From NCBI GenBank assembly GCA_028826165.1, contig JAPDFW010000106.1, positions 1 to 64,000 of the forward strand: a stretch of 64,000 nucleotides of DNA, read 5' to 3'. Shown one piece after another: positions 22,868-64,000 of this stretch. Position 1 is the first letter of the stretch, and every line of letters starts with the position of its first letter. Made by a program: the position numbers and the translations under genes. The DNA comes from Anaeramoeba ignava BMAN (lineage: Eukaryota > Protista > Anaeramoebae). The notes beneath the pieces are model-generated. The model made no database searches and had not been told where the DNA came from. It was given only the letters and a program-made list of their open reading frames with translations.

Positions 22868-23925
22868 GGAAAATAATTTAAAAATGTAATTTAATATTTA
22901 ATTTTATTATTAAAATATTAATTTAATGTTTTAAATTTAAATATTTTATTATTTAAATATTTAACATATAAATATAAAAAATAAGAATAAGTTTAATTTA
23001 ATATTTAATTTCATTATTAAAATAATAATTTAATGTTTTAGATTTAAATATTTTATTATTTAATTATTTAACATATAAATATAAAAAATAAGAATAGATT
23101 TAATTTAATATTTAATTTATAAATTAATTTAAAAATGTAATTTTATATTTAATTTTATGTTTAAAATATTAATTTAATGTTTTAAATTTAAATATTTTAT
23201 TATTTAAATATTTAACATATAAATATAAAAATAAGAATAGATTTAATTTAATATTTAATTTATAAATTAATTTAAAAATATAATTTAATATTTAATTTTA
23301 TTTTTAAAATATTAATTTAATGTTTTAGATTTAAATATTTTATTATTTAAATATTTAAAATATAAATATAAAAATAAGAATAAGTTTAATTTAATATTTA
23401 ATTTATAAATTAATTTAAAAATATAGTTTAATATTTAATTTTATTATTAAAATAATAATTTAATGTTTTAGATTTAAATATTTTATTATTTAAATATTTA
23501 ACAAATAAATATAAAAATAAGAATAGATTTAATTTAATATTTAATTTATAATTTAATTTAAAAATATAATTTAATATTTAATTTTATGTTTAAAATAATA
23601 ATTTATTGTTTTAGATTTAAATATTTTATTATTTAAATATTTAACATATAAATATAAAAATAAAAATAGATTTAATTTAATATTTAATTTATAAAATAAT
23701 TTAAAAATATAATTTAATATTTAATTTTATTATTAAAATAATAATTTATTGTTTTAGATTTAAATATTTTATTATTTAAATATTTAACATATAAATATAA
23801 AAAATAAGAATAGATTTAATTTAATATTTAATTTATAAATTAATTTAAAAATATAATTTAATATTTAATTTTATGTTTAAAATAATAATTTATTGTTTTA
23901 AATTTAAATATTTTATTATTTAAAA
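22868..23925. repeat. ~141-bp AT-rich satellite array 1 (~7 units)
   Basis: Recurring unit AATAAGAATAGATTTAATTTAATATTTAATTTATAAATT...GTTTTAGATTTAAAT...TTTAACATATAAATATAAAA. Confidence 0.9.
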
Positions 23926-24097: not shown

Positions 24098-26997
24098 TTA
24101 TTTTTCTAATCTCTCAAGTGTCCAATTTCCATTTTCTTGAATATCTTTATTATTTGGGAAATTATTCATTGCTTTAATTATTATTGATATTCCTTCTTTT
24201 TTTCTAATTTCAATTCGATTTTCTTTTTATTTATTTTTGATTTGGATTTTAAATTAATTAATTATTTAATTATTTAATTATTCAAAAAAAAGGTTTTTAA
24301 ATTGATAAAAATATTTTACCTTTATTTAAAGCAATATTACTTAAAGCCCAAATTCCATTTTCTTGAATATCTTGATTATTTGGGAAATTATTCATTGATT
24401 TAATTATTGTTGATATTCCATCTTTTTTTCTAATTTCAATTTTATTTTCTTTTTATTTTAATTTGGATTTTAAATTAATAAAATATTTAATTATTTAATT
24501 ATTCAAAAAAAATGTTTTTAAATTGATAAAAATATTTTACCATCATTTGCAGCAATATTACTTAAAGCCCAAATTCCATTTTTTTGAATATCTTGATTAT
24601 TTGGAAAATTATTCATTGATTTAATTATTATTGATATTCCATCTTTTTTTCTAATTTCAATTTTATTTTCTTTTTATTTATTTTTGATTTGGATTTTAAA
24701 TTAATAAATTATTTAATTAATTATTTCAAAAAAAAGGTTTTTAAATTGATAAAAATATTTTACTATCATTCACAGAAATATTAATAAAAGCTCGACAAGA
24801 ATAATTTTGGATATCTTCATTATTTGGGAAATTATTCATTGATTTAATTATTGTTGATATTCCATCTCGTATTCTAATTTCAATTTGATTTTCTTTTTAT
24901 TTATTTTTGATTTGGATTTTAAATTAATAAAATATTTATTTAATTAATTATTTAAAAAAAAAGGTTTTTAAATTGATAAAAATATTTTACCATTATTTGC
25001 AGAAATATTACTTAAAGCCCAAATTCCATATTTTTGAATATCTTGATTATTTGGAAAATTATTCATTGATTTAATTATTATTGATATTCCATCTTTTTTT
25101 CTAATTTCAATTTTATTTTCTTTTTATTTATTTTTGATTTGGATTTTAAATTAATAAATTATTTATTTAATTATTTCAAAAAAAGGTTTTTAAATTGATA
25201 AAAATATTTTACTATCACTATTTGCAGAAATATTAATAAAAGCTTGACAAGAATAATTTTGGATATCTTGATTATTTGGGAAATTATTCATTGATTTAAT
25301 TATTGTTGATATTCCATCTCGTATTCTAATTTCAATTTGATTTTCTTTTTATTTATTTTTGATTTAGATTTTAAATTAATAAATTATTTAATTATTTATT
25401 TCCAAAAAAAAGGTTTTTAAATTGATAAAATAGTTTTTACCATGATCTCCAACAGAAAAATTATGTAAAATAAAACATCCATTTTGTTGAATTTTTTCAT
25501 TTAATTGAAATTCTTTCATCCATTGAATTGTTTTTTCAATATTAATATCTTCTTCAACTTTAATTTCTTTTGTTTAGATTTAATTTTAATTTTAATTTTA
25601 TATTTAGATTTATATTTAGATTTAGATTTAGATTTAGGGAATAAATTACCATAAATTTTGCCTTCTTTTTGTTCTCGAAAATTTTGTAAATTAATTTGTA
25701 TTTTTCTTTCTTCTATTTCAGGTTTATTTTCTCTTTTTGTTAATTCAATTTTATTTTGATTTAAATCATTTTCTTTTTCTTCTAATTTTTGTTGTTTTTG
25801 ATTTATTTCATTTTCTTTTTTTTGTAATTTAGTTTTATTTTGATTTAAATCATTTTCTTTTTCTTCTAATTTTTGCTGTTTTTTATCCAATTTTTGTTGT
25901 TTTTGATCTAATTTTTGTTGTTTTTGGTTTAATTTGGTTTCTTTTTGTGTTAAATTTTCTGAAATTGATTTTAATTTTCCCATTTTTTCATCTAATAAAT
26001 CAACAAAAAAATTAGATGGAAATAATTGAAATAATTGTGTTTTTTCAATTTTTTGAATTTCTTCTTTTGTAATTTGTTTCTTTTCTTGAATTTTAATTAA
26101 AATTTCATAAATAGTTTTTTTAATTGAATTTGAATTTGAATTTGAATTTAATTCTGATTCTTCTTGAAAAGATTGATTAAAATTGAGTTTATTATTTTTC
26201 ATCCATTCAATAATTATTTCTTGAATTAAATTTGTTTGATCTCTTCCAAAATTTGAAATTAAAAAATCAATAATATTTAAGAATTCATTTGTTTTTAATT
26301 TTGAAATTTCTTTTTTCTGAAGAAGATTATTGTAATTTTTAAGAATAAAATTTTGACAAATTTCTAAAAGAAAATTTGAATGAATTTCTTTTGATTTTGA
26401 AAATATTTCAAATATATTATTTTGATTAATAATTGGTTCAATTTCTTTTTCAATTTTAATTTTTAATTTTTCTAATCTAATTATATCAGCAAATTTAAAA
26501 TATTTTTCGAATTCTTGATGATTAATATTGATTTCACCTTCATAAATATATTTGATTATTGGTTCAACAATTTCAAAATCGAATTCTTTAAAATAAATTT
26601 GATTTTCTCCTTTTTCTTTTGTAAATAAATCAAAAAATGAACTTCTTGCATTTAAAATGATTTTGTGGCATTTTATTGAGTTTTCTTTCTCATTTTCTTT
26701 CTCATTTTCTTTCTCATTTTCTTTCTTGTTTTCTTTTTCATTTTCTTTCTTCTTTTCTTTCTTATTTTCTTTCTTATTTTCTTTCTTATTTTCTTTTTCA
26801 TTTTCTTTCTTATTTTCTTTCTTATTTTCTTTACAATAAATTGTAAAATCTGTAAATTGTTTTTGAGTTTGATAAATTTTTGAAAAATTAAGTGATTGTT
26901 CTTTAAGTAAAATATTATCAATTTCTTTGATTGATAATTTGTATAATTCTTTTAAGTTTTCTGTGTTATTGTTATTGTTATTATTATTGTTATTCAT
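24098..26997 (-). CDS. BTB/POZ(-BACK)-coiled-coil-Armadillo protein, copy A: exon 1 26997-25650, cap exon 25566-25441, 5 internal ARM exons, terminal ARM exon
   Basis: BTB: FTDFTIYC..IKCHKIILNARSSFF..IIKYIYEG. Manually spliced exons give ARM repeats such as ENKIEIRKKDGISTIIKSMNNFPNNQDIQENGIWALSNIALNK. Ends WTLERLEK, stop 24098-24100. Confidence 0.9.
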
Positions 26998-27084: not shown

Positions 27085-27752
27085 GGAAAATAATTTAAAA
27101 ATATAATTTAATATTTAATTTCATGTTTAAAATAATAATTTAATGTTTTAGATTTAAATATTTTATTATTTAAATATTTAACATATAAATATAAAAAATA
27201 AGAATAGATTTAATTTAATATTTAATTTATAAATTAATTTAAAAATATGATTTAATATTTAATTTTATTATTGAAATAATAATTTAATGTTTTAGATTTA
27301 AATATTTTATTATTTAAATATTTAACATATAAATATAAAAAATAGAAATAGGTTTAATTTAATATTCAATTTGTAAATTAATTTAAAAATATAATTTAAT
27401 ATTTAATTTTATGTTTAAAATATTAATTTAATGTTTTTATATTTAAATATTTTATTATTTTAAATATTTAACATATAAATATAAAAATGAGAATAAATTT
27501 AATTTAATATTTAATTTATAAATTAATTTAAAAATATAATTTAATATTTAATTTTATTATTAAAATAATAATTTAATGTTTTAAATTTAAATATTTTATT
27601 ATTTAAATATTTAACATATAAATATAAAAAATAGAAATAGGTTTAATTTAATATTCAATTTGTAAATTAATTTAAAAATATGATTTAATATTTAATTTTA
27701 TGTTTAAAATAATAATTTATTGTTTTAGATTTAAATATTTTATTATTTAAAA
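27085..27752. repeat. ~141-bp satellite array 2 (~4.5 units)
   Basis: Same unit as array 1. Confidence 0.9.
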
Positions 27753-27925: not shown

Positions 27926-30900
27926 TTATTTTTCTAATCTTTCAAGTGTCCAATTTCCTTTTTCTTGAATATCTTTATTATTTGGGAAATTATTCATTGC
28001 TTTTTTAATTAATTCATTTCCATTTAATCTTTTAATTTCAATTTGATTTTCTTTTTATTTATTTTTGATTTGGATTTTAAATTAATAAAATATTTAATTA
28101 TTTAATTATTCCCAAAAAAAAAGGTTTTTAAATTAATAAAAATATTTTACCATTATTTGCAGCAATATTACTTAAAGCCCAACATCCATTTTTTTGAATA
28201 TCTTGATTATTTGGGAAATTATTCATTGATTTAATTATTGTTGATATTCCATCTTTTTTTCTAATTTCAATTTTATTTTCTTTTTATTTTGATTTGATTT
28301 GGATTTTAAATTAATAAAATATTTAATTATTTAATTATTCCAAAAAAAAGGTTTTTAAATTAATAAAAATATTTTACTATCATTCACAGAAATATTAATA
28401 AAAGCTCGACAAGAATAATTTTGGATATCTTGATTATTTGGGAAATTATTCATTGATTTAATTATTGTTGAAATTCCTTTTTTTTTTCTAATTTCAATTT
28501 TATTTTCTTTTTATTTTGATTTGGATTTTAAATTAATAAATTATTTAATTATTTCAAAAAAAAGGTTTTTAAATTGATAAAAATATTTTACCATTATTCC
28601 CTATAGCAATATTACTTAAAGCCCAACATCCTTGTTTTTGAATATCTTGATTATTTGGGAAATTATTCATTGATTTAATTATTGTTGATATTCCATCTTT
28701 TTTTCTAATTTCAATTTTATTTTCTTTTTATTTATTTTTGATTTGGATTTTAAATTAATAAAATATTTAATTATTTAATTATTCCAAAAAAAAAGGTTTT
28801 TAAATTAATAAAAATATTTTACCATCATTTGCAGCAATATTTTTTAAAGCCCAACATCCATGTTTTTGAATATCTTGATTATTTGGGAAATTATTCATTG
28901 ATTTAATTATTGTTGAAATTCCATCTTTTTTTCCAATTTCAATTTGATTTTCTTTTTATTTTGATTTGGATTTTAAATTAATTAATTATTTAATTATTTA
29001 ATTATTCCAAAAAAAAGGTTTTTAAATTGATAAAAATATTTTACCATTATTAAAAGAAAGATTATTTAAAGCCCAACATCCATGTTTTTGAATATCTTGA
29101 TTATTTGGAAAATTATTCATTAATTTAATTATTATTGATATTCCATCTTTTTTTCCAATTTCAATTTGATTTTCTTTTTATTTATTTTGATTTGGATTTT
29201 AAATTAATAAATTATTTAATTAATTATTCCCAAAAAAAAAGTTTTTAAATTGATAAAAATATTTTACTATCATTCACAGAAATATTAATAAAAGCTCGAC
29301 AAGAATAATTTTGGATATCTTCATTATTTGGGAAATTATTCATTGATTTAATTATTGTTGATATTCCATCTCGTATTCTAATTTCAATTTGATTTTCTTT
29401 TTATTTATTTTTGATTTGGATTTTAAATTAATTAATTATTTAATTATTTATTTCCAAAAAAAAGGTTTTTAAATTGATAAAATAGTTTTTACCATGATCT
29501 CCAACAGAAAAATTATGTAAAATAAAACATCCATTTTGTTGAATTTTTTCATTTAATTGAAATTCTTTCATCCATTGAATTGTTTTTTCAATATTAATCT
29601 CTTCTTCAAATTTAATTCCTTTTGTTTAGATTTAATTTTAATTTTAATTTTATATTTAGATTTAGATTTAGATTTAGATTTATATTTAGATTTATATTTA
29701 GATTTAGATTTAGATTTAGGGAATAAATTACCAGAAATTTTGCCTTCTTTTTGTTCTCGAAAATTTTGTAAATTAATTTGTATTTTTCTTTCTTCTATTT
29801 CAGGTTTATTTTCTCTTTTTGTTAATTCAATTTTATTTTGATTTAAATCATTTTCTTTTTCTTTTAATTTTTGTTGTTTTTGATTTATTTCATTTTCTTT
29901 TTTTTGTAATTTAGTTTTATTTTGATTTAAATCATTTTCTTTTTCTTCTAATTTTTGTTGTTTTTGATTTAATTCATTTTCTTTTTGTAAATTTTCATTT
30001 TTCTTTTGATTTAATTTTTGTTGTTTTTGATTTAAATGATTTTCTTTTTCTTGTATTTTTTGTTCTCTTTTTTCTAGTTCAATTTTATTTTGATTTATTT
30101 CATTTTCTTTTTGTAGATTTTCATTTTCTTTTTCTTGTATTTTTTGTTCTCTTTTTTCTAGTTCAATTTTATTTTGATTTAAATGATTTTCTTTTTGTAG
30201 ATTTTCATTTTTCTTTTGATTTAATTTTTGTTGTTTTTGATTTATTTCATTTTCTTTTTTTTGTAATTTAGTTTTATTTTGATTTATTTGATTTTCTTTT
30301 TCTTCTAATTTTTGTTGTTTTTGATTTATTTCATTTTCTTTTTGTAAATTTTCATTTTCTTTTACTTTTAATTTTTGTTGTTTTTGATTTATTTCATTTT
30401 CTTTTTTTTGTAATTGAGTTTTATTTTTATTTAAATCATTTTCTTTTTCTTCTAATGTTTGTTGTTTTTGATTTAATTTTTGTTGTTTTTGATTTAATTT
30501 GGTTTCTTTTTGTGTTAAATTTTCTGAAATTGATTTTAATTTTCCCATTTTTTCATCTAATAAATCAACAAAAAAATTAGATGGAAATAATTGAAATAAT
30601 TGTGTTTTTTCAATTTTTTGAATTTCTTCTTTTGTAATTTGTTTCTTTTCTTGAATTTTAATTAAAATTTCATAAATAGTTTTTTTAATTGAATTTGATT
30701 TTAAATTTGAATTTAATTCTGATTCTTCTTGAAAAGATTGATTAAAATTGAGTTTATTATTTTTCATCCATTCAATAATGATTTCTTGAATTAAATTTGT
30801 TTGATCTCTTCCAAAATTTGAAATTAAAAAATCAATAATATTTAAGAATTCATTTGTTTTTAATTTTGAAATTTCTTTTTTTGAAGAAGATTATTGTAAT

Positions 30901-31564
30901 TTTTAAGAACAAAATTTTGACAAATTTCTAAAAAGAAAATTTGAATAATTTCTTTTGATTTTGAAAATATTTCAAATATATTATTTTGATTAATAATTGG
31001 TTCAATTTCTTTTTCAATTTTGATTTTTAATTTTTCTAATCTAATTATATCAGCAAATTTAAAATATTTTTCGAATTCTTGATGATTAATATTGATTTCA
31101 CCTTCATAAATATATTTGATTATTGGTTCAACAATTTCAAAATCGAATTCTTTAAAATAAATTTGATTTTCTCCTTTTTCTTTTGTAAATAAATCAAAAA
31201 ATGAACTTCTTGCATTTAAAATGATTTTGTGGCATTTTATTGAGTTTTCTTTCTCATTTTCTTTTTTATTTTCTTTCTTATTTTCTTTCTTGTTTTCTTT
31301 CTTATTTTCTTTCTTATTTTCTTTCTTATTTTCTTTCTTATTTTCTTTCTTATTTTCTTTCTTATTTTCTTTCTTATTTTCTTTCTTCTTTTCTTTACAA
31401 TAAATTGTAAAATCTGTAAATTGTTTTTGAGTTTGATAAATTTTTGAAAAATTAAGTGATTGTTCTTTAAGTAAAATATTATCAATTTCTTTGATTGATA
31501 ATTTGTATAATTCTTTTAAGTTTTCTGTGTTATTGTTATTGTTATTATTATTATTGTTATTCAT
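27926..31564 (-). CDS. BTB-coiled-coil-Armadillo protein, copy B: cap exon 29618-29493, 6 internal ARM exons, terminal exon; apparent frameshifts at ~30880-30950
   Basis: Near-identical to copy A. Three 1-nt indels relative to A, two of them in homopolymer runs. ARM exons end at about 29268, 29045, 28823, 28592, 28378 and 28151. Confidence 0.85.
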
Positions 31565-31632
31565 TTTGTATTTTTCTTTTTAAAAGAAAAATGAAAAAAG
31601 AAAATTAGAAAAAGGAAAATAAAAAGAAAAAA

Positions 31633-33310
31633 AATAATTTAAAATATAATTTAATATTTAATTTTATGTTTTAAAATAATAATTTAATGTTTTTAGATTT
31701 TAAATATTTTATTATTTAAATATTTAACATATAAATATAAAAATAAGAATAGATTTAATTTAATATTTAATTTATAAATTAATTTAAAAATATGATTTAA
31801 TATTTAATTTTATTATTGAAATAATAATTTATTGTTTTAGATTTAAATATTTTATTATTTAAAATATTTAACATATAAATATAAAAATAAAAATAGATTT
31901 AATTTAATATTTAATTTATAAATTAATTTAAAAAAATATAATTTAATATTTAATTTTATGTTTAAAATAATAATTTAATGTTTTAGATTTAAATATTTTA
32001 TTATTTAATTATTTAACATATAAATATAAAAATAAAAATAGATTTAATTTAATATTTAATTTATAAATTAATTTAAAAATATAATTTAATATTTAATTTT
32101 ATTATTAAAATAATAATTTATTGTTTTAGATTTAAATATTTTCTTATTTAAATATTTAACATATAAATATAAAAATGAAAATAGATTTAATTTAATATTT
32201 AATTTATAAAATAATTTAAAAATATAATTTAATATTTTAATTTTGTTATTAAAATAATAATTTAATGTTTTAGATTTAAATATTTTATTATTTAAATATT
32301 TGACATAAAAATATAAAAATGAAAATAGATTTAATTTAATATTTAATTTATAAATTAATTTAAAAATATGATTTAATATTTAATTTTATTATTGAAATAA
32401 TAATTTAATGTTTTAGATTTAAATATTTTATTATTTAAATATTTAACATATAAATATAAAAATGGGAATAGGTTTAATTTAATATTTAATTTATAAATTA
32501 ATTTAAAAATATAATTTAATATTTAATTTTATGTTTAAAATAATAATTTATTGTTTTAGATTTAAATATTTTCTTATTTAAATATTTAACATATAAATAT
32601 AAAAAAATGAGAATAGATTTAATTTAATATTTAATTTATAAATTAATTTAAAAATATAATTTAATATTTAATTTTATTATTAAAATAATAATTTATTGTT
32701 TTTAGATTTAAATATTTTCTTATTTAAATATTTAACATATAAATATAAAAATGAGAATAGATTTAATTTAATATTTAATTTATAAATTAATTTAAAAATA
32801 TAATTTAATATTTAATTTTGTTATTAAAATAATAATTTAATGTTTTTTAAATTTTAATATTTTCTTATTTAAATATTAAACATATAAATATAAAAAATGA
32901 GAATAGATTTAATTTAATATTTAATTAATAAATTAATTTAAAAATATGATTTAATATTTATTTTTATGTTTTAAAATAATAATTTATTGTTTTAGATTTT
33001 AAATATTTTATTATTTAAAAATTTAACATATAAATATAAAAATGGGAATAGATTTAATTTAATATTTAATTTATAAATTAATTTAAAAATATAATTTAAT
33101 ATTTAATTTTATGTTTAAAATATTAATTTATTGTTTTTAAATTTAAATATTTTATTATTTAAATATTTAACATATAAATATAAAAAATGAAAATATATTT
33201 AATTTAATATTTAATTTATAAATTAATTTAGAAATATAATTTAATATTTAATTTTATTATTAAAATAATAATTTATTGTTTTAGATTTAAATATTTTATT
33301 ATTTAAAAAT
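31633..33310. repeat. ~141-bp satellite array 3 (~12 units)
   Basis: Same unit as array 1. Confidence 0.9.
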
Positions 33311-33481: not shown

Positions 33482-36302
33482 TTATTTTTCTAATCTCTTA
33501 AGTGTCCAATTTCCATTTTTTTGAATATCTTTATTATTTGGGAAATTATTCATTGCTTTTTTAGTTAATTCATTTCCATTTAATCTTTTAATTTCAATTT
33601 CATTTTCTTTTTATTTTTGATTTGAATTTTAAATTAATTAATTATTTATTTAATTATTTCAAAAAAAAGGTTTTTAAATTAATAAAAATATTTTACCTTT
33701 ATTATTAAAAGAAATATTTCTTAAAGCCCAAATTCCTTTATATTGAATATCTTGGTTATTTGGGAAATTATTCATTGATTTAATTATTGTTGATATTCCT
33801 TCTTTTTTTCTAATTTCAATTTTATTTTCTTTTTATTTATTTTTGATTTGGATTTTTAATTAATAAATTATTTATTTAATTAATTAAAAAAAAAGGTTTT
33901 TAAATTGATAAAATTATTTTACCATTATTCCCTATAGCAATATTACTTAAAGCCCAAATTCCATGTTTTTGAATATCTTGATTATTTGGGAAATTATTCA
34001 TTGATTTAATTATTGTTGAAATTCCATCTTTTTTTCCAATTTCAATTTGATTTTCTTTTTATTTATTTTTGATTTGGATTTTAAATTAATAAATTATTTA
34101 TTTATTTATTTATTTCAAAAAAAAGGTTTTTAAATTGATAAAATAGTTTTTACCATCACTATTTGCAGAAATATTAATAAAAGCTTGACAAGAATAGTTT
34201 TGAATATCTTGATTATTTGGGAAATTATTCATTGATTTAATTATTGTTGAAATTCCTTCTTTTTTTCTAATTTCAATTTCTTTTTATTTATTTTGATTTG
34301 GATTTTAAATCAATAAATTATTTAATTATTTAAAAAAAAAGGTTTTTAAATTGATAAAATAGTTTTTACCATGATCTCCAACAGAAAAATTATGTAAAAT
34401 AAAACATCCATTTTGTTGAATTTTTTCATTTAATTGAAATTCTTTCATCCATTGAATTGTTTTTTCAATATTAATCTCTTCTTCAACTTTAATTCCTTTT
34501 GTTTAGATTTAATTTTAATTTTAGATTTAATTTTAATTTTGATTTAGGAAATAAATTACCAGAAATTTTGCCTTCTTTTTGTTCTCGAAAATTTTGTAAA
34601 TTAATTTGTATTTTTCTTTCTTCTTTGATTCTAACTTTGTTTTCTCTTTTTGCTAATTCAATTTTACTTTGATTTAAATCATTTTCTTTTTGTAAATTTT
34701 CATTTTTCTTTTGATTTAATTTTTGTTTTTTTTGATTTAAATCATTTTCTTTTTCTTGTATTTTTTGTTCTCTTTTTTGTAATTGAGTTTTATTTTGATT
34801 TAAATCATTTTCTTTTTTTTGTAATTGAGTTTTATTTTGATTTACTTGATTTTCTTTTTCTTCTAATTTTTGTTGTTTTTTATTTAATTTTTGTTGTTTT
34901 TTATCTAATTTTTGTTGTTTTTGATTTATTTCATTTTGATTTTCTTCTAATTTTTGTTGTTTTTGATTCAAATGATTTTCTTTTTGTAAATTTTCATTTT
35001 CTTTTTCATTTACTTTTTGTTGTTTTTGATTTATTTCATTTTCTTTTTTTTGTAATTGAGTTTTATTTTGATTTAAATCATTTTCTTTTTCTTCTAATTT
35101 TTGTTGTTTTTGATTCAAATGATTTTCTTTTTCTTGTATTTTTTGTTCTCTTTTTTCTAGTTGAGTTTTATTTTGATTTAAATCATGTTCTCTTTTTTGT
35201 AATTGAGTTTTATTTTGATTTACTTGATTTTCTTTTTCTTCCAATGTTTGTTGTTTTTGATTTAATTTTTGTTGTTTTTGATTTAATTTGGTTTCTTTTT
35301 GTGTTAAATTTTCTGAAATTGATTTTAATTTTCCCATTTTTTCATCTAATAAATCAACAAAAAAATTAGATGGAAATAATTGAAATAATTGTGTTTTTTC
35401 AATTTTTTGAATTTCTTCTTTTGTCATTTGTTTCTTTTCTTGAATTTTAATTAAAATTTCATAAATAGTTTTTTTAATTGAATTTGAATTTGATTTTAAA
35501 TTTGAATTTAATTCTAATTCTTCTTGAAAAGATTGATTAAAATTGATTTTATTATTTTTCATCCATTCAATAATTATTTCTTGAATTAAATTTGTTTGAT
35601 CTCTTCCAAAATTTGAAATTAAAAAATCAATAATATTTAAGAATTCATTTGTTTTTAATTTTGAAATTTCTTTTTTTTGAAGAAGATTATTGTAATTTTT
35701 AAGAATAAAATTTTGACAAATTTCTAAAAGAAAATTTGAATGAATTTCTTTTGATTTTGAAAATATTTCAAATATATTATTTTGATTAATAATTGGTTCA
35801 ATTTCTTTTTCAATTTTGATTTTTAATTTTTCTAATCTAATTATATCAGCAAATTTAAAATATTTTTCGAATTCTTGATGATTAATATTGATTTCACCTT
35901 CATAAATATATTTGATTATTGGTTCAACAATTTCAAAATCGAATTCTTTAAAATAAATTTGATTTTCTCCTTTTTCTTTTGTAAATAAATCAAAAAATGA
36001 ACTTCTTGCATTTAAAATGATTTTGTGGCATTTTATTGAGTTTTCTTTCTTGTTTTCTTTCTTATTTTCTTTCTTATTTTCTTTCTCATTTTCTTTCTTA
36101 TTTTCTTTCTTATTTTTCTTTTCTTCTTTTCTTTACAATAAATTGTAAAATCTGTAAATTGTTTTTGAGTTTGATAAATTTTTGAAAAATTAAGTGATTG
36201 TTCTTTAAGTAAAATATTATCAATTTCTTTGATTGATAATTTGTATAATTCTTTTAAGTTTTCTGTGTTATTGTTATTGTTATTATTATTATTATTATTC
36301 AT
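33482..36302 (-). CDS. BTB-coiled-coil-Armadillo protein, copy C: cap exon 34495-34370, 3 internal ARM exons, terminal exon; apparent 1-nt frameshift at ~36115
   Basis: Near-identical to copies A and B. Extra T in a homopolymer of the KKEN repeat. ARM exons end at about 34154, 33923 and 33697. Stop 33482-33484. Confidence 0.85.
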
Positions 36303-51278: not shown

Positions 51279-51944
51279 TTATAAATTAATTTTTTGTTTT
51301 TGTTTTTGATAAAATAAAATTAATTTTTTCTATTTTTTTTTTGTTTTTTTTTTTAATTTAAAAAGGAGAAAATCTTCTTTTTTTTCTTCTTTTTTTTTTT
51401 AAATTAAAAAAAATTAAAAAATTAAAAAAATCTTTATTATTTTAATTATTTTTCAATTATTATAAAGTTTTAATTTAATCTAAATTATTATAATCTTTTT
51501 TAATATTTTATTTTGAATTGATTTATCAATTTCAAATATATTTAAATAATTTAATAAAAATCTTTTTTGTTAATTAAAATATTTCTAAGATTAATTTTTT
51601 CTTTTTTTCTCTTTTAAAAAGAATTGAAATAAATAATGGATATTAAAAATGGTTATCTATACTTTATGGGTTTGAGAAATAATTTTTATTCTAATTAAAT
51701 TTCTTTTTATTGATTAAATATTTGTGATTGTTTATTTTGTAATTTTTGGATCATGAAAACATAAAATTGGAAATATTTTATTTTAATCATTATATTAAAA
51801 TTTTTTTTCTTTTTTAAAAGATAATACTTGATTTAATTTGTTTTTCAATTAAATTTTGACATGAACAAAAATGAAAAAAAATGAAAAAATGAAATTTAAA
51901 AAAATTGGAAAGTAAAAAAATCCAAATTTGATATCCAAAATTCT

Positions 51945-52460
51945 AATTTATAAATTAATTTAAAAATATAATTTCTAAAATAATTTTATGTTTAAATAAT
52001 AATTTATTGTTTTAGATTTAAATATTTTCTTATTTAAATATTTAACATATAAATATAAAAAATGAAAATAGATTTAATTTGATATTTAATTTATAAATTA
52101 ATTTAAAATATAATTTAACATTTAATTTTATGTTTAAAATAATAATTTAATGTTTTAAATTTAAATATTTTCTTATTTAAATATTTAACATATAATTATA
52201 AAAAATAAGAATAAGTTTAATTTAATATTTAATTTATAAATTAATTTAAAAATATAATTTAATATTTAATTTTATTATTAAAATAATAATTTATTGTTTT
52301 AGATTTAAATATTTTATTATCTAAATATTTAACATATAAATATAAAAAATAAGAATAGATTTAATTTAATATTTAATTTATAAATTAATTTAGAAATATA
52401 ATTTAATATTCAATTTTATTATTAAAATAATAATTTAATGTTTTAGATTTAAATATAAAA
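51945..52460. repeat. ~141-bp satellite array 5 (~3.5 units)
   Basis: Same unit as array 1. Confidence 0.85.
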
Positions 52461-55934: not shown

Positions 55935-57508
55935 AAAAATATAAAAAAATAAGAATAAGTTTAATTTAATATTTAATTTATAAATTAATCTAAAAATATA
56001 ATTTAATATTTAATTTTATTATTAAAATAATAATTTAATGTTTTAAATTTAAATATTTTATTATTTAAATATTTAACATATAAATATAAAAATGAGAATA
56101 GATTTAATTTAATATTTAATTTATAAATTAATTAAAAATATAATTTAATAATCAATTTTATTATTAAAATATTAATTTATTATTTTAGATTTAAATATTT
56201 TCTTATTTAAATATTTAACATATAAATATAAAAAAATAGGAATAGTTTTAATTTAATATTTAATTTATAAATTAATTAAAAATATAATTTAATATTTAAT
56301 TTTATGTTTAAAATAATAATTTAATGTTTTAGATTTAAATATTTTATTATTTAAATATTTAACATATAAATATAAAAATGAGAATAGATTTGATTTAATA
56401 TTTAATTTATAAATTAATTTAGAAATATAATTTCTAAAATAATTTTATTATTAAAATAATAATTTATTGTTTTAAATTTAAATATTTTATTATTTAAGAA
56501 TTTAACATATAAATATAAAAAATAAGAATAGATTTAATTTAATATTTAATTTATAAATTATTTTAAAAATATAATTTAATAATCAATTTTATGTTTAAAA
56601 TAATAATTTAATGTTTTAGATTTAAATATTTTCTTATTTAAATATTTAACATATAAATATAAAAAATGAGAATAGATTTAATTTAATATTTAATTTATAA
56701 ATTAATTTAAAAATATAATTTAATATTTAATTTTATGTTTAAAATAATAATTTAATGTTTTAGATTTAAATATTTTATTATTTAAATATTTAACATATAA
56801 ATATAGAAAATAAAAATAAGTTTAATTTAATATTTAATTAATAAAATAATTTAAAAATATAATTTAATAATTAATTTTATTATTAAAATAATAATTTAAT
56901 GTTTTAGATTTAAATATTTTATTATTTAAATATTTAACATATAAATATAAAAATGGGAATAGATTTGATTTAATATTTAATTTATAAATTAATTTAAAAA
57001 TATAATTTCTAAAAATAATTTTATGTTTAAAATAATAATTTATTGTTTTAGATTTAAATATTTTATTATTTAAATATTTAACATATAAATATAAAAATGA
57101 GAATAAATTTAATTTAATATTTAATTTATAAAATAATTTAAAAATATAATTTAATATTTAATTTTATTATTAAAATAATAATTTAATGTTTTAAATTTAA
57201 ATATTTTATTATTTAAATATTTAACATAAAAATATAAAAAATGAAAATAGATTTAATTTAATATTTAATTTATAAATTAATTTAAAAATATAATTTAATA
57301 TTTAATTTTATGTTTAAAATAATAATTTAATGTTTTAGATTTAAATATTTTATTATTTAAATATTTACCAAATAAATATAAAAAATGAGAATAGATTTAA
57401 TTTAATATTTAATTTATAAATTAATTTAAAAATATAATTTAATATTTAATTTTATTATTAAAATATTAATTTAATGTTTTAGATTTAAATATTTTATTAT
57501 TTAAAAAT
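55935..57508. repeat. ~141-bp satellite array 6 (~11 units)
   Basis: Same unit as array 1. Confidence 0.9.
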
Positions 57509-57679: not shown

Positions 57680-60600
57680 TTATTTTTCTAATCTCTTAAG
57701 TGTCCAATTTCCTTTTTCTTGAATATCTTTATTATTTGGGAAATTATTCATTGCTTTAATTATTGTTGATATTCCTTCTTTTTTTCTAATTTCAATTTTA
57801 TTTTCTTTTTATTTATTTTTTGATTTGGATTTTAAATTAATAAATTATTTAATTATTTCCAAAAAAAAAGGTTTTTTAAATTGATAAAAATATTTTACCT
57901 TCATTTAAAGCAATATTTCTTAAAGCCCAAATCCCATATTTTTGAATATCTTGATTATTTGGGAAATTATTCATTGATTTAATTATTATTATTGATATTC
58001 CTTCTTTTTTTCTAATTTTAATTTGATTTTCTTTTTATTTATTTTTTGATTTGAATTTTAAATTATTAAATTATTTATTTATTCCCAAAAAAAAAAGGTT
58101 TTTAAATTGATAAAAATATTTTACCTTTATTTAAAGCAATATTTCTTAAAGCCCAAATTGCATGTTTTTGAATATCTTGATTATTTGGGAAATTATTCAT
58201 TGATTTAATTATTATTGATATTCCTTCTTTTTTTCCAATTTCAATTTGATTTTCTTTTTATTTATTTTTTGATTTGAATTTTAAATTATTAAATTATTTA
58301 TTTAATTATTTCCAAAAAAAAAGGTTTTTAAATTGATAAAAATATTTTACCTTCATTTAAAGCAATATTTCTTAAAGCCCAAATCCCATGTTTTTGAATA
58401 TCTTGATTATTTGGGAAATTATTCATTGATTTAATTATTATTGATATTCCATCTTTTTTTCTAATTTCAATTTGATTTTCTTTTTATTTATTTTTTGATT
58501 TGGATTTTAAATTATTAAATTATTTATTTAATTATTTCCAAAAAAAAGGTTTTTAAATTGATAAAATTAATATTTAATTATTTTGATTTAAATTTGAAAT
58601 TAAATTTAAAAAAATGTTTTTTTATTATTATTTCTTATTTTCAATTTTTAAATAAATTTAATAAAAAAAAGTGGATTGATTTTAAAAATTAAAGAGAAGA
58701 ATAATAATTGATTTAGTTTTTAGTTTTTAAATTGATAAAAATATTTTACCTTTATTAAAAGAAATATTTTTTAAAGTCCAAATTCCATTTTCTTGAATAT
58801 CTTGATTATTTGGGAAATTATTCATTGATTTAATTATTATTGATATTCCATCTTTTTTTCCAATTTCAATTTGATTTTCTTTTTATTTATTTTGATTTGA
58901 ATTTTAAATTATTAAATTATTTATTTATTCCCAAAAAAAAAGGTTTTTAAATTGATAAAAATATTTTACCTTTATTAAAAGAAATATTTTTTAAAGTCCA
59001 AATCCCATATTTTTGAATATCTTGATTATTTGGGAAATTATTCATTGATTTAATTATTATTGATATTCCATCTTTTTTTCCAATTTCAATTTGATTTTCT
59101 TTTTATTTATTTTTTGATTTGAATTTTAAATTATTAAATTATTTATTTATTCCCAAAAAAAAAGGTTTTTAAATTGATAAAAATATTTTACCTTTATTAA
59201 AAGAAATATTTTTTAAAGCCCAACATCCTTGTTTTTGAATATCTTGATTATTTGGGAAATTATTCATTGATTTAATTATTGTTGAAATTCCTTCTTTTTT
59301 TCTAATTTCAATTCGATTTTCTTTTTATTTATTTTTGATTTGAATTTTAAATTAATAAATTATTTATTTATTTCCAAAAAAAAAGGTTTTTAAATTGATA
59401 AAAATATTTTACCTTCATTTAAAGCAATATTTCTTAAAGTCCAAATTCCATTTTCTTGAATATCTTGATTATTTGGGAAATTATTCATTGATTTAATTAT
59501 TATTGATATTCCATCTTTTTTTCTAATTTCAATTCGATTTTCTTTTTATTTATTTTTGATTTGAATTTTAAATTAATAAATTATTTATTTAATTATTTCC
59601 CAAAAAAAAAGTTTTTAAATTGATAAAAATATTTTACCTTCATTATTAAAAGAAAGATTAATAAAAGTTTGACAAGAATAGTTTTGAATATCTTGATTAT
59701 TTGGGAAATTATTCATTGATTTAATTATTATTGATATTCCTTCTTTTTTTCCAATTTCAATTTTATTTTCTTTTTATTTATTTTGATTTGGATTTTAAAT
59801 TATTAAATTATTTATTTAATTATTTCCAAAAAAAAGGTTTTTAAATTGATAAAAATATTTTACCTTCATTTAAAGAAATATTTTTTAAAGTCCAAATTCC
59901 ATTTTCTTGAATATCTTGATTATTTGGGAAATTATTCATTGATTTAATTATTGTTGAAATTCCATCTTTTTTTCTAATTTCAATTTTATTTTCTTTTTAT
60001 TTATTTTTTGATTTGGATTTTAAATTATTAAATTATTTATTTCCAAAAAAAAGGTTTTTAAATTGATAAAATTAATATTTAATTATTTTGATTTAAATTT
60101 GAAATTAAATTTAAAAAAATGTTTTTTTATTATTATTTCTTATTTTCAATTTTTAAATAAATTTAATAAAAAAAAGTGGATTGATTTTAAAAATTAAAGA
60201 GAAGAATAATAATTGATTTAGTTTTTAGTTTTTAAATTGATAAAAATATTTTACCTTTATTAAAAGAAATATTTTTTAAAGTCCAAATTCCATTTTCTTG
60301 AATATCTTGATTATTTGGGAAATTATTCATTGATTTAATTATTGTTGATATTCCTTCTTTTTTTCTAATTTCAATTCGATTTTCTTTTTATTTATTTTTT
60401 GATTTGAATTTTAAATTAATAAATTATTTATTTATTTCCAAAAAAAAAGGTTTTTAAATTGATAAAAATATTTTACCTTTATTTAAAGAAATATTATTTA
60501 AAGCCCAACATCCATTTTCTTGAATATCTTGATTATTTGGGAAATTATTCATTGCTTTAATTATTGTTGAAATTCCTTCTTTTTTTCTAATTTCAATTTG

Positions 60601-63600
60601 ATTTTCTTTTTATTTATTTTTTGATTTGAATTTTAAATTATTAAATTATTTATTTATTTCCAAAAAAAAAGGTTTTTAAATTGATAAAAATATTTTACCT
60701 TTATTAAAAGAAATATTTTTTAAAGTCCAAATTCCATATTTTTGGATATCTTGATTATTTGGGAAATTATTCATTGATTTAATTATTATTGAAATTCCAT
60801 CTTTTTTTCTAATTTCAATTCGATTTTCTTTTTATTTATTTTTTGATTTGAATTTTAAATTAATAAATTATTTATTTATTTCAAAAAAAAAGGTTTTTAA
60901 ATTGATAAAAATATTTTACTATCATTTAAAGCAATATTATTTAAAGTCCAAATTCCATTTTCTTGAATATCTTGATTATTTGGGAAATTATTCATTGATT
61001 TAATTATTATTGATATTCCTTCTTTTTTTCCAATTTCAATTTGATTTTCTTTTTATTTATTTTGATTTGAATTTTAAATTAATAAATTATTTATTTATTC
61101 CCAAAAAAAAGGTTTTTAAATTGATAAAAATATTTTACCTTTATTAAAAGAAATATTTTTTAAAGCCCAAATTCCTTTTTCTTGAATATCTTGATTATTT
61201 GGGAAATTATTCATTGATTTAATTATTGTTGAAATTCCTTCTTTTTTTCTAATTTCAATTCGATTTTCTTTTTATTTATTTTGATTTGGATTTTAAATAA
61301 ATTAATTATTCCAAAAAAAGGTTTTTAAATTGATAAAATTATTTTACCTTCATTTTCAGCAATATTACTTAAAGCCCAAATTCCATGTTTTTGAATATCT
61401 TGATTATTTGGGAAATTATTCATTGATTTAATTATTGTTGATATTCCATCTTTTTTTCTAATTTCAATTCGATTTTCTTTTTATTTATTTTTGATTTGGA
61501 TTTTAAATTATTTAATTATTTAATTATTTATTCCCAAAAAAAAGGTTTTTAAATTGATAAAAATATTTTACCTTCATTTTCAGCAATATTACTTAAAGCC
61601 CAAATTCCATGTTTTTGAATATCTTGATTATTTGGGAAATTATTCATTGATTTAATTATTGTTGAAATTCCATCTTTTTTTCCAATTTCAATTTTATTTT
61701 CTTTTTATTTATTTTTGATTTGGATTTTAAATTAATTAATTATTTAATTATTTCCAAAAAGGTTTTAAATTGATAAAAATATTTTACCATTATTTAAAGC
61801 AATATTACTTAAAGCCCAAATTGCATTTTTTTGAATATCTTGATTATTTGGGAAATTATTCATTGATTTAATTATTGTTGAAATTCCATCTTTTTTTCCA
61901 ATTTCAATTTGATTTTCTTTTTTATTTATTTTTGATTTGGATTTTAAATTAATAAATTAATTATTTATTTATTTATTCCCAAAAAAAGGTTTTTAAATTG
62001 ATAAAATAGTTTTTACCATCATCTCCAACAGAAAAATTATGTAAAATAAAACATCCATTTTGTTGAATTTTTTCATTTAATTGAAATTCTTTCATCCATT
62101 GAATTGTTTTTTCAATATTAATATCTTCTTCAACTTTAATTTCTTTTTTTAAATTTAATTTTAATATTAATTATAATTTTAATTTAGGAAATAAATTACC
62201 AGAAATTTTTCCTTCTTTTTGTTCTCGAAAATTTTGTAAATTAATTTGGATTTTTCTTTCTTCTTTTATTCTAACTTTGTTTTCTCTTTTTGCTAATTTA
62301 ATTTTATTTTGATTTAAATCATTTTCTTTTTGTAAATTTTCATTTTTCTTTTGATTTAATTTTTGTTTTTTTTGATTTAAATGATTTTCTTTTTCTTGTA
62401 TTTTTTGTTCTCTTTTTTCTAATTGAGTTTTATTTTGATTTAAATCATTTTCTTTTTCTTTCAATTTTTGTTGTTTTTGATTTAAATGATTTTCTTTTTC
62501 TTGTATTTTTTGTTCTCTTTTTTCTAATTGAGTTTTATTTTGATTCATTTGATTTTCTTTTTGTAAATTTTCATTTTTCTTTTGATTTAATTTTTGTTTT
62601 TTTTGATTTAAATGATTTTCTTTTTCTTGTATTTTTTGTTCTCTTTTTTCTAATTGAGTTTTATTTTGATTTAAATCATTTTCTTTTTCTTCTAATTTTT
62701 GTTGTTTTTGATTCAAACCATTTTCTTTTTGTAAATTTTCATTTTCTTTTACTTTTACTTTTTGTTGCTTTTGATTTATTTCATTTTCTTTTTTTTGTAA
62801 TTGAGTTTTATTTTGATTTAAATCATTTTCTTTTTCTTCTAATGTTTGTTGTTTTTGATTTAATTTTTGTTGTTTTTTTAAATTTTCATTTTCTTTTTCA
62901 TTTACTTTTTGTTGCTTTTGATTTATTTCATTTTCTTTTTTTTCTAATTGAGTTTTATTTTGATTTAAATCATTTTCTTTTTCTTCTAATTTTTGTTGTT
63001 TTTGATTTAAATCATTTTCTTTTTGTAAATTTTCATTTTCTTTTTCATTTACTTTTTGTTGTTTTTGATTTATTTCATTTTCTTTTTCTTCTAATTTTTG
63101 TTGTTTTTGATTTAATTCAATTTTATTTTGATTTAGATCATTTTCTTTTTCTTTTAATTTTTGTTGTTTTTGATTTAAATCATTTTCTTTTTGTAAATTT
63201 TCATTTTCATTTTCTTTTACTTTTTGTTGTTTTTGATTTATTTCATTTTCTTTTTTTTGTAATTGATTTTTATTTTGATTTAAATCATTTTCTTTTTCTT
63301 CTAATGTTTGTTGTTTTTTATCCAATTTTTGTTGTTTTTGATTTAATTTTTGTTGTTTTTGGTTTAATTTGGTTTCTTTTTGTGTTAAATTTTCTGAAAT
63401 TGATTTTAATTTTCCCATTTTTTCATCTAATAAATCAACAAAAAAATTAGATGGAAATAATTGAAATAATTGTGTTTTTTCAATTTTTTGAATTTCTTCT
63501 TTTGTAATTTGTTTCTTTTCTTGAATTTTAATTAAAATTTCATAAATAGTTTTTTTAATTGAATTTGAATTTGATTTTAAATTTGAATTTAAATTTGATT

Positions 63601-64000
63601 CTTCTTGAAAAGATTGATTAAAATTAAGTTTATTATTTTTCATCCATTCAATAATTATTTCTTGAATTAAATTTGTTTGATCTCTTCCAAAATTTGAAAT
63701 TAAAAAATCAATAATATTTAAGAATTCATTTGTTTTTAATTTTGAAATTTCTTTTTTTTGAAGAAGATTATTGTAATTTTTAAGAATAAAATTTTGACAA
63801 ATTTCTAAAAGAAAATTTGAATGAATTTCTTTTGATTTTGAAAATATTTCAAATATATTATTTTGATTAATAATTGGTTCAATTTCTTTTTCAATTTTAA
63901 TTTTTAATTTTTCTAATCTAATTATATCAGCAAATTTAAAATATTTTTCGAATTCTTGATGATTAATATTGATTTCACCTTCATAAATATATTTGATTAT
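57680..64000 (-). CDS. BTB-coiled-coil-Armadillo protein, copy D (5' end beyond the right edge): exon 1 to 62200, cap exon 62142-62017, 17 internal ARM exons, terminal exon
   Basis: Same BTB/BACK sequence as copies A-C. ARM exons end at about 61788, 61572, 61348, 61139, 60920, 60699, 60477, 60255, 59864, 59638, 59413, 59192, 58970, 58750, 58351, 58125 and 57899. Stop 57680-57682. Confidence 0.9.
58567..58722. mobile_element. 156-bp intronic insertion flanked by the 18-bp direct repeat GTTTTTAAATTGATAAAA (copy 1)
   Basis: Absent from sibling introns; direct repeats at 58549-58566 and 58723-58740. Confidence 0.6.
60072..60227. mobile_element. Second copy of the same 156-bp intronic insertion with the same 18-bp direct repeat
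   Basis: Direct repeats at 60054-60071 and 60228-60245; the sequence appears identical to copy 1 by eye. Confidence 0.6.

Follow-up and report, generated by a model that had tools for sequence, protein, structure and literature searches.

Near-identical armadillo-repeat exons with hypervariable helix-3 positions in predicted BTB-coiled-coil genes of Anaeramoeba ignava

The repeats of high internal conservation (HIC) of fungal NLRs are near-identical WD40, ANK or TPR units, in which concerted evolution and repeat shuffling go together with diversification of a few binding-surface sites (PMC12222747, PMC4986451). In designed armadillo (ARM) repeat proteins (dArmRPs), conserved Asn residues of the concave side bind the peptide backbone, and Glu30 and Trp33 (Glu156/Trp159 in M3; Glu198/Trp201 in M4), which matter for peptide binding, are exposed (PMC4756613). 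ARMC5 together with CUL3 forms an active E3 ligase, the substrate being recognised via the ARM domain (PMC9462479, PMC9226510). In this study, a stretch of 64,000 nt from the protist Anaeramoeba ignava BMAN (contig JAPDFW010000106.1, positions 1 to 64,000; hereafter the window) was analysed. Reading of splice sites and translations on its minus strand revealed 17 ARM-repeat exons, termed cassettes, at 57899-61916. They form the array (copy D) of the last of four tandem predicted genes, A to D. With positions counted from the first full codon of the cassette, which makes the conserved W number 33 and the conserved N number 37, diversifying selection keeps positions 29, 30, 33 and 36, plus 40, 42, 2 and 6, different among the cassettes, and position 26 in other arrays. 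Our reading, to which we assign a probability of about 0.6, is that the stretch encodes the substrate-recognition domain of a BTB/coiled-coil/ARM gene, built of homogenised units with pocket codons under diversifying selection, and that it would act in an E3 adaptor of variable specificity.

The evolutionary regime of the cassettes is that of HIC repeats, but the locus is not an NLR. As in the HIC families (Podospora HNWD WD40 repeats; ANK; TPR), near-identical repeats evolve in concert, a few binding-surface codons per repeat are hypervariable, the repeat number differs between paralogs (17, 3, 6 and 5 here), repeats are shuffled, and many effector heads occur. Unlike in those families, the repeats are of the ARM class, the head is BTB, RING-kinase or absent instead of a NOD/STAND NTPase, every repeat has its own exon and intron, and the host is a metamonad-related protist. 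No match to NACHT or NB-ARC was found in the BTB-coiled-coil heads. The sample for comparison consisted of the window and 11 further loci, from which 221 complete cassettes were extracted; they belong to 17 arrays with 5 or more cassettes each. HIC repeats are delimited by more than 85% amino-acid identity over at least 100 aa, and the arrays mostly stay below this unless the hot sites are excluded: the repeats of copy D were 81% identical in amino acids and 91.5% in nucleotides, the amino-acid figure being 88% when the six hot codons are left out, and over the 17 arrays amino-acid identity was 64-87%, with only one array (L010) above 85%. A literature search of incomplete coverage found nothing linking the HIC regime with armadillo repeats.

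The window contains 35 copies of a 26-nt core motif, against 0 expected, and these define the four tandem minus-strand genes, each of which opens its array with a divergent repeat and closes it with a conserved terminal exon. The initial annotation had claimed 31 internal cassettes and had listed 17 C-terminal strings for copy D; the 31 were confirmed (D 17, C 3, B 6, A 5), in addition to four terminal exons, and the strings were found, 17 of 17, in the same order on the minus strand with one exon each. Each copy D cassette is a single phase-1 exon, of 129 nt in 15 cases and 132 nt in two, and the introns are 80-97 nt long with two exceptions of 262 and 270 nt, so that the whole unit of exon and intron measures ~220 bp and is near-identical between cassettes. 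The exons are bordered by AAAAAG upstream and by GTAAAATA downstream. All introns are in phase 1, with G (A once) as the last exon base and AA opening the next exon; the split codon between cassettes would read GAA or AAA. Frame, phase and GT-AG sites were intact, with no stop, in all 31 cassettes and all four terminal exons. The gene model, read one exon at a time, is a predicted one. Its features, all on the minus strand, are as follows, the tokens in the cassette lines giving the helix-3 segment.

62200 to 64000, on to contig position 64402, minus strand: gene D exon 1, a 743-aa open reading frame (ORF) with BTB and a long E/K/Q-rich coiled coil of 63-nt repeats
62200/62199, minus strand: donor splice site of gene D exon 1, G/GTAATT
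62017 to 62142, minus strand: gene D exon 2, first, divergent ARM repeat (N-cap-like), 126 nt, phase 1, from translation and splice sites; match to the cassette hidden Markov model weak
61788 to 61916, minus strand: cassette D00, KNAIWALSNIALNN; Pfam Arm 23.5 bits against a cut-off of 20.6
61572 to 61700, minus strand: cassette D01, KHGIWALSNIAENE
61348 to 61476, minus strand: cassette D02, KHGIWALSNIAENE
61139 to 61267, minus strand: cassette D03, EKGIWALKNISFNK
60920 to 61048, minus strand: cassette D04, ENGIWTLNNIALND; final exon base A, so that the split codon would give K, not E
60699 to 60827, minus strand: cassette D05, KYGIWTLKNISFNK
60477 to 60605, minus strand: cassette D06, ENGCWALNNISLNK
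60255 to 60383, minus strand: cassette D07, ENGIWTLKNISFNK, followed by the 262-nt intron
59864 to 59992, minus strand: cassette D08, ENGIWTLKNISLNE
59638 to 59769, minus strand: cassette D09, Trp33-less type NYSCQTFINLSFNNE, 132 nt; type also in copies A, B and C and in arrays L002 and L003
59413 to 59541, minus strand: cassette D10, ENGIWTLRNIALNE
59192 to 59320, minus strand: cassette D11, KQGCWALKNISFNK
58970 to 59098, minus strand: cassette D12, KYGIWTLKNISFNK
58750 to 58878, minus strand: cassette D13, ENGIWTLKNISFNK, followed by the 270-nt intron
58351 to 58479, minus strand: cassette D14, KHGIWALRNIALNE
58125 to 58253, minus strand: cassette D15, KHAIWALRNIALNK
57899 to 58030, minus strand: cassette D16, KYGIWALRNIALNE, 132 nt, with an extra Ile codon in helix 2
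57680 to 57804, minus strand: gene D terminal exon, C-cap repeat ending in QEKGNWTLKRLEK and a stop; 3' flank conserved in 4 of 4 copies

Variation was unevenly distributed over the cassette. The core IIKSMNNFPNNQDIQ was invariant in the 31 cassettes save for S17 and Q25 (29/31 each), and I3, I5, G10-S12, I14-K16, M18-N24, D26-Q28 and N37 were invariant in the window cassettes. W33 was present in 25 of 31, with Q or R in the remainder; in other arrays this position is W, G, R, F or L. Segregating sites in copy D numbered 24 in the 43 nt of codons 29-43, compared with 9 in the 86 nt of the rest of the exon and 16 in 89 aligned intron columns (Fisher p = 7e-8 vs rest of exon; p = 1.7e-5 vs intron). 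Nucleotide diversity among the 31 window cassettes reached 0.23 in helix 3, compared with 0.060 for the intron and 0.043 for the core. These counts agree with the description of an almost invariant core and varying C-terminal codons given in the initial annotation. Its further statement that variation is focused on helix 3 holds in so far as helix 3 is the most variable part, but positions 40 and 42, plus 2 and 6 on helix 1, are also hot. Toggling of the N-terminal part was likewise observed (Q/K/R at 2, R/G at 6, D/E at 9, T/I at 13), but two of the changes, R/G at codon 6 and T/I at codon 13, are not conservative, and the toggle codons carry a non-synonymous excess (ratio above 1). Within-array amino-acid diversity over the 17 arrays was highest, in this order, at positions 36, 30, 29, 40, 2, 33, 42 and 26. 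The 221 cassettes fall into subfamilies, each with its own invariant scaffold. The Trp-less type NYSC(Q/R)(A/T/I)FIN is conserved across paralogs and is often the first internal cassette.

The ratio of non-synonymous to synonymous differences per site (pN/pS; Nei-Gojobori, cassette pairs) was 0.17 for core codons 10-29 in all cassettes and 0.23 in copy D, whereas it reached 1.75 and 2.58, respectively, for helix-3 codons 30-43. The diversifying selection proposed in the initial annotation is supported by pN/pS both in helix 3 of the window cassettes and across the 17 arrays. For the six hottest codons pN was 0.24-0.47, as compared with a median pS of 0.134 and a median intron diversity of 0.076 over the 17 arrays; hot-codon pN was above pS in every one of the 17 arrays and above intron diversity in 16 of them. 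The same hot positions recurred in arrays without recent common history.

The fold of the cassettes and the place of the variable positions in it were examined by profile and structure comparison. A profile of the 31 cassettes matched designed ARM proteins (5MFM, 5AEI and others) with E values of 1e-13 to 1e-9 and importin-alpha at ~1e-5; when single cassettes were compared with Pfam, D00 passed the Arm cut-off, D12 gave no match, and D09 gave a weak ARM_LRRK2 match. The alignment placed PNN-DIQ..G.WAL.NI against PNE-QILQEALWALSNIA, with W33 and N37 aligned and positions 26-40 keeping the same internal numbers. An AlphaFold2 model of the ARM domain of a paralog, the A. ignava 'protein aardvark' (P0001:440-661), was poor from the single sequence (predicted local distance difference test score, pLDDT, 57), and the run with a 30-sequence alignment was used, which gave a pLDDT of 97.6 and a predicted template-modelling score of 0.93. 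It showed three helices in every repeat: H1 at cassette positions 42-7, H2 at 10-20 and H3 at 25-38. In Foldseek, the model matched designed ARM proteins, beta-catenin, plakophilin, Vac8 and LRRK2 ARM with template-modelling (TM) scores of 0.83-0.87 and a root mean square deviation of ~2.2 A. Designed ARM proteins (PDB 5AEI, 5MFM and 6SA8) and importin-alpha are the best sequence matches and among the best structural ones, and share with the cassettes a repeat of ~42 residues (43 codons here) and a ladder of W33 and N37. WALSNIA is identical between designed proteins and several cassettes, and Gly33 occurs in both. Unlike the cassettes, the repeats of importin-alpha are not near-identical to each other, and the designed proteins are synthetic consensus proteins; the extra hot positions 40, 42, 2 and 6 of the cassettes fall outside the pocket published for them, and peptide binding by the Anaeramoeba arrays is predicted.

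The engineered specificity pocket of 5AEI consists of seven residues, 155, 159, 162, 194, 197, 198 and 201 (PMC12202725). By the numbering of PMC4756613, one repeat contributes internal positions 29, 33 and 36 to it and the following repeat contributes 26, 29, 30 and 33, the positions that are hypervariable in nature. Pockets selected from dArmRPs carry K29, R30 and E33/Q33, and the library permits Gly at two positions because natural ARM proteins have it (PMC11228518); by the 5AEI conversion, both map to internal position 33. The five pocket positions (26, 29, 30, 33, 36) were all among the 8 most variable of 42 (permutation p = 3e-5), and in the non-window arrays none of 200,000 randomly drawn sets of five positions was as variable as the pocket. 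In the window cassettes, D26 is invariant, positions 29, 30, 33 and 36 are hot, and the backbone-binding Asn37 is invariant. The variable residues had been expected to line the peptide-binding groove. Mapped on the paralog model (pLDDT 97.6), rather than on the window protein, they lie on the surface of helix 3, and those of helix 3 coincide with the positions of the peptide side-chain pocket of designed ARM proteins.

A function can be proposed from these features and from the head. BTB (PF00651) was detected in gene D (E = 1.9e-12), gene A (7.6e-13) and gene B (5.6e-14); BACK matched weakly in gene A (16.5 bits, below the cut-off of 20.9) and above the cut-off in P0001 (25.8 bits). An adjacent cassette pair would form the pocket for one residue of an extended peptide, and the array would read a peptide stretch in the helix-3 groove. 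The BTB head would dimerise and recruit a cullin, which would make the protein an E3 ubiquitin-ligase adaptor of variable specificity, and bound proteins may be ubiquitinated by analogy with ARMC5-CUL3. At least 8 cullin loci (any cullin type) are present in the genome. The diversity may track rapidly changing targets, either non-self (prey, symbionts, viruses, mobile elements) or many endogenous substrates. BTB-ARM cullin-3 adaptors (human ARMC5; plant ARIA/ABAP1-type) likewise combine BTB with a substrate-binding ARM domain. In ARMC5, however, ARM lies N-terminal to BTB, and the gene is conserved and single-copy, with no near-identical cassettes, whereas the order here is BTB-BACK, coiled coil, ARM, and the family is greatly expanded. 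Expanded adaptor families of the BTB-MATH and F-box kinds in nematodes and plants are reportedly under positive selection in the substrate-binding domain, which Thomas (2006, Genome Res) is said to have read as defence against changing targets. The family described here resembles them in being composed of expanded ubiquitin-ligase adaptors, if the proposed role is correct, with selection in the substrate-binding domain; it differs in that those families diversify through duplication of entire genes with one MATH or FTH domain and not through intragenic amplification of a hypervariable repeat module. Going further, the family might be a natural counterpart of an engineered modular peptide binder, with hundreds of arrays whose pockets are individually diversified, on ubiquitin-ligase, kinase or no heads, forming a germline repertoire for many peptides, possibly non-self (symbiont, prey, virus, mobile element), in which exon skipping or rapid gain and loss of the symmetric phase-1 exons could re-compose specificities with the frame kept; we offer this as speculation and hold it to be improbable.

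Several points weigh against the reading of the array as the substrate-recognition domain of an E3 adaptor. The gene model is derived from sequence, and the structural mapping from a paralog model and the alignment to designed ARM proteins. Peptide binding, Cul3 binding and any targets are predictions. The E3-adaptor role is not general, because arrays of the same type also occur on the RING-kinase-SH3 protein P0010, on the ARM-RCC1-BTB protein P0002 and in head-less ARM-only tandem genes of another contig. The published seven-residue pocket includes neither hot position 40, in the loop after helix 3, nor hot positions 42, 2 and 6, which form a stripe on helix 1; a Ser40-Glu2 crystal contact in a designed ARM protein (PMC4756613) suggests that positions 40 and 2 are neighbours. 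The magnitudes of the selection estimates are somewhat optimistic because the hot codons were picked from the same data. In addition, the assembly was made from Nanopore reads with short-read Pilon polishing, and some variants may be mis-phased between units.

Near-identical units of ~220 bp are as expected from unequal crossing-over or gene conversion, and signals of exchange were found. Among the aligned exon-plus-intron units, 56% of informative site pairs failed the four-gamete test, and the pairwise homoplasy index (PHI) gave p < 0.0005 for all 31 units, for copy D alone and for copies A-C. Cassettes D07 and D13 are identical over ~400 nt save for an 8-nt indel. The identity begins near codon 14, spans helix 3 and the long intron, and ends where the next exon starts; the 5' exon parts differ at four sites and the next exons at many. 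Because this tract starts inside an exon, exchange with breakpoints inside cassettes does happen. The two long introns each contain a copy of an insert.

58550 to 58730, minus strand: 181-nt insert in the intron after D13, 100% identical to 60055-60235
60055 to 60235, minus strand: the other copy of this insert, located in the intron that follows D07, inside the ~400-nt D07/D13 tract

Many AT-rich tandem arrays in other parts of the genome match this insert at ~70-79%, and it may be a satellite fragment that was caught in an intron and then copied by conversion.

The mosaics could instead come from recurrent selected mutation, that is, convergence at a few sites, or from polishing errors, an explanation that we consider possible though on the doubtful side. 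Inside the 42 nt of helix 3, incompatible pairs are frequent (minimum number of recombination events, Rm, at least 8 in copy D) and occur down to a few nt apart, yet PHI within helix 3 was not significant in copy D (p = 0.38). It was significant in some other arrays but is confounded there, because multi-nucleotide codon alleles link adjacent sites; no evidence for micro-conversion was therefore taken from it. Pilon, applied to near-identical units, can also mis-assign variants. Against this explanation stand the whole-unit PHI values, the D07/D13 tract with its diverged flanks, and the recurrence of multi-nucleotide alleles on different backgrounds. A polishing artefact as the source of the pattern as a whole was rejected, as it cannot yield codon-specific variation that recurs in 17 arrays. 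The mosaic reassortment described in the initial annotation is thus real at the scale of units and tracts, whereas its micro-scale conversion within helix 3 is inseparable from recurrent selected mutation. The residue 'code' which it had considered is not supported, because the signatures at positions 29, 30, 33, 36 and 40 numbered 165 among 221 cassettes, the commonest occurring seven times, and because a designed-ARM pocket is made from two adjacent repeats (PMC12202725). Variation in helix 3 is hypervariability and not a small vocabulary of the kind known as repeat-variable diresidues in transcription activator-like effectors.

Relaxed constraint without diversifying selection, under which exposed residues drift while the scaffold is under purifying selection, is unlikely. 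It would fit the surface location of the variable residues on helix 3 and helix 1, as well as the older arrays (L006_2, L007_2, L009, L012), in which hot-site pN was just 0.9-1.5 times the intron diversity. However, neutral sites cannot outpace the neutral rate, and the clearest signal of selection came from young arrays, in which hot-codon pN was 4-10 times the intron diversity of the same units and up to 38 times pS. The latter value is that of L010, with a pS of 0.010, an intron diversity of 0.05 (248 columns) and a pN of 0.38 at hot codons vs 0.008 at other codons. A table of the McDonald-Kreitman kind, based on minimum changes per codon column, gave non-synonymous/synonymous counts of 278/20 at hot codons vs 366/140 elsewhere (odds ratio 5.3, p = 3.6e-14). 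Still less probable is a non-functional repeat, namely a tandem duplication that is decaying or not expressed (a pseudogene, or a satellite with exon relics) and whose pattern merely reflects its history. In its favour are the reliance of the gene model on sequence, the protein searches, in which no annotated protein was found for the window's own genes, and the head of copy B, which is divided into two ORFs. Decay is at odds with the intact frames, phases and splice sites of the 31 cassettes and four terminal exons, with the core pN/pS of 0.17, and with the recurrence of the architecture in 17 arrays and in annotated spliced paralogs.

Targeted hypermutation of the helix-3 segment (by a diversity-generating retroelement, by an activity of the AID kind or by error-prone repair) would explain the very sharp clustering of substitutions within ~40 nt but is highly improbable, since synonymous changes per codon per array were alike at hot codons (0.20) and elsewhere (0.23), so that the local mutation rate is not raised there, since the interleaved codons 27, 28, 31, 35 and 37 are conserved, and since the changes track helix periodicity and not a base or motif bias. 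Only amino-acid change is in excess, and this favours selection over both targeted hypermutation and plain relaxation. The synonymous rate was also the ground for rejecting a mechanism like that of diversity-generating retroelements; neither a reverse transcriptase nor a template repeat was searched for.

The three other paralogs of the window have shorter arrays. Gene A lies at ~24.1-27.0 kb, gene B at ~27.9-31.6 kb and gene C from ~33.5 to at least 35.6 kb, and gene D extends from 57.7 kb to past the window end, all on the minus strand.

24098 to 25344, minus strand: copy A ARM array (5 internal cassettes, terminal exon), with the BTB-BACK-coiled-coil exon of the gene at 25516-26997
27926 to 29396, minus strand: copy B ARM array (6 internal cassettes, terminal exon)
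33482 to 34279, minus strand: copy C ARM array (3 internal cassettes, terminal exon)

The head of copy B (29568-31564, minus strand) consists of two ORFs, one with BTB (30860-31564) and one with the coiled coil (29568-30767), and stops lie inside its genome match; the split may reflect a pseudogene, an intron or an error in the assembly. The coiled coil of exon 1 (62261-63393, minus strand, in gene D, with equivalents in A-C) is made of tandem units of 21, 42 or 63 nt, and its length varies greatly among paralogs, the ORF being 743 aa in D vs 493 aa in A. Directly 3' of all four BTB-ARM paralogs lies an AT-rich satellite of 143-145 bp with 91-95% matches between copies (blocks 22994-23924, 27087-27751, 31631-33307 and 55937-57505; a fifth block is at 51944-52456). 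Since the satellite stands 3' of each paralog, the duplicated segment seems to comprise satellite, ARM array and head. The window is very AT-rich (GC 6-39% per 2-kb window). Its sole GC-rich stretch (38.6% vs ~15-20%) harbors a 752-aa WD40 ORF at 13903-16161 on the minus strand. No Rfam match was found in the window. The A. ignava genome, assembled from Nanopore reads with Pilon polishing, is 80.65% A+T overall and 91.9% A+T in introns, and the paper describing it mentions neither armadillo nor BTB (PMC11550330). In the bacterial-code list, no ORF of at least 80 aa overlaps 57899-61920; gene models of cassettes are for this reason easily overlooked, and the family may be under-annotated.

Beyond the window, one 42-aa cassette gave 1315 first-look candidate matches in the 42.8-Mb genome, and the 150 of these that were scored all had E < 2e-9 and lay in arrays on many contigs. 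Word-based protein searches returned homologs from A. ignava only, three in number. An exhaustive search retrieved thousands of unnamed ARM relatives, few of which were named by cluster look-up. The closest database relative of the gene A head was P0001 (40% identity), which is encoded at 99% identity elsewhere in the same assembly and is annotated as a spliced BTB-ARM protein. Dictyostelium Aardvark and beta-catenin also have ARM repeats, and the structural match to beta-catenin has a TM score of ~0.85; unlike them, the family here has a BTB and coiled-coil head, near-identical repeats and a large membership. Orthology was rejected on the BTB head and near-identical cassettes vs ~12 divergent repeats and no BTB. 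Because nothing indicates such orthology, the name 'aardvark' is a best-hit label from automated annotation.

Other members of the family differ in their heads. At L006/L007 (G000:C22:59000-76000), at least 3 tandem ARM-only genes of ~15 to more than 20 cassettes each have a Met directly before the first repeat and no space for a BTB head; the same positions are hot, with W/L at 29 and W/L/F at 33. P0010 (A. ignava KAJ5075045.1), with RING, protein-kinase and SH3 domains, has a C-terminal ARM array with near-identical helix-3 segments (IKGCGALQNIA...), and in its model one cassette is without helix 1; the array may be very young and undiversified, or the model collapsed. P0006 (EukProt g1545.t1), which is GC-richer and probably comes from another eukaryote, is 41% identical to the query and has 10 near-identical 44-aa ARM repeats, again most variable at positions 30, 33, 36 and 40. 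The regime may be widespread in the LRRK2-like ARM subfamily.

Concerted evolution with hypervariable binding sites has until now been known from the WD40, ANK and TPR sensors of fungal NLRs. If the proposed reading is true, it would extend to a fourth repeat class, ARM, and the same regime would be recorded with new heads, BTB E3 adaptors among them, and in an anaerobic protist that branches deeply. The helix-3 positions varied by natural selection would then be those which engineers randomise when re-targeting designed ARM proteins, and more than 200 natural cassettes would provide a ready library of pocket variants for the design of modular peptide binders. For the genome of A. ignava, a large share of the short introns may sit in such arrays, multiplied along with the exons, and introns multiplied in this way would offer a concrete example of how tandem duplication leads to intron gain.

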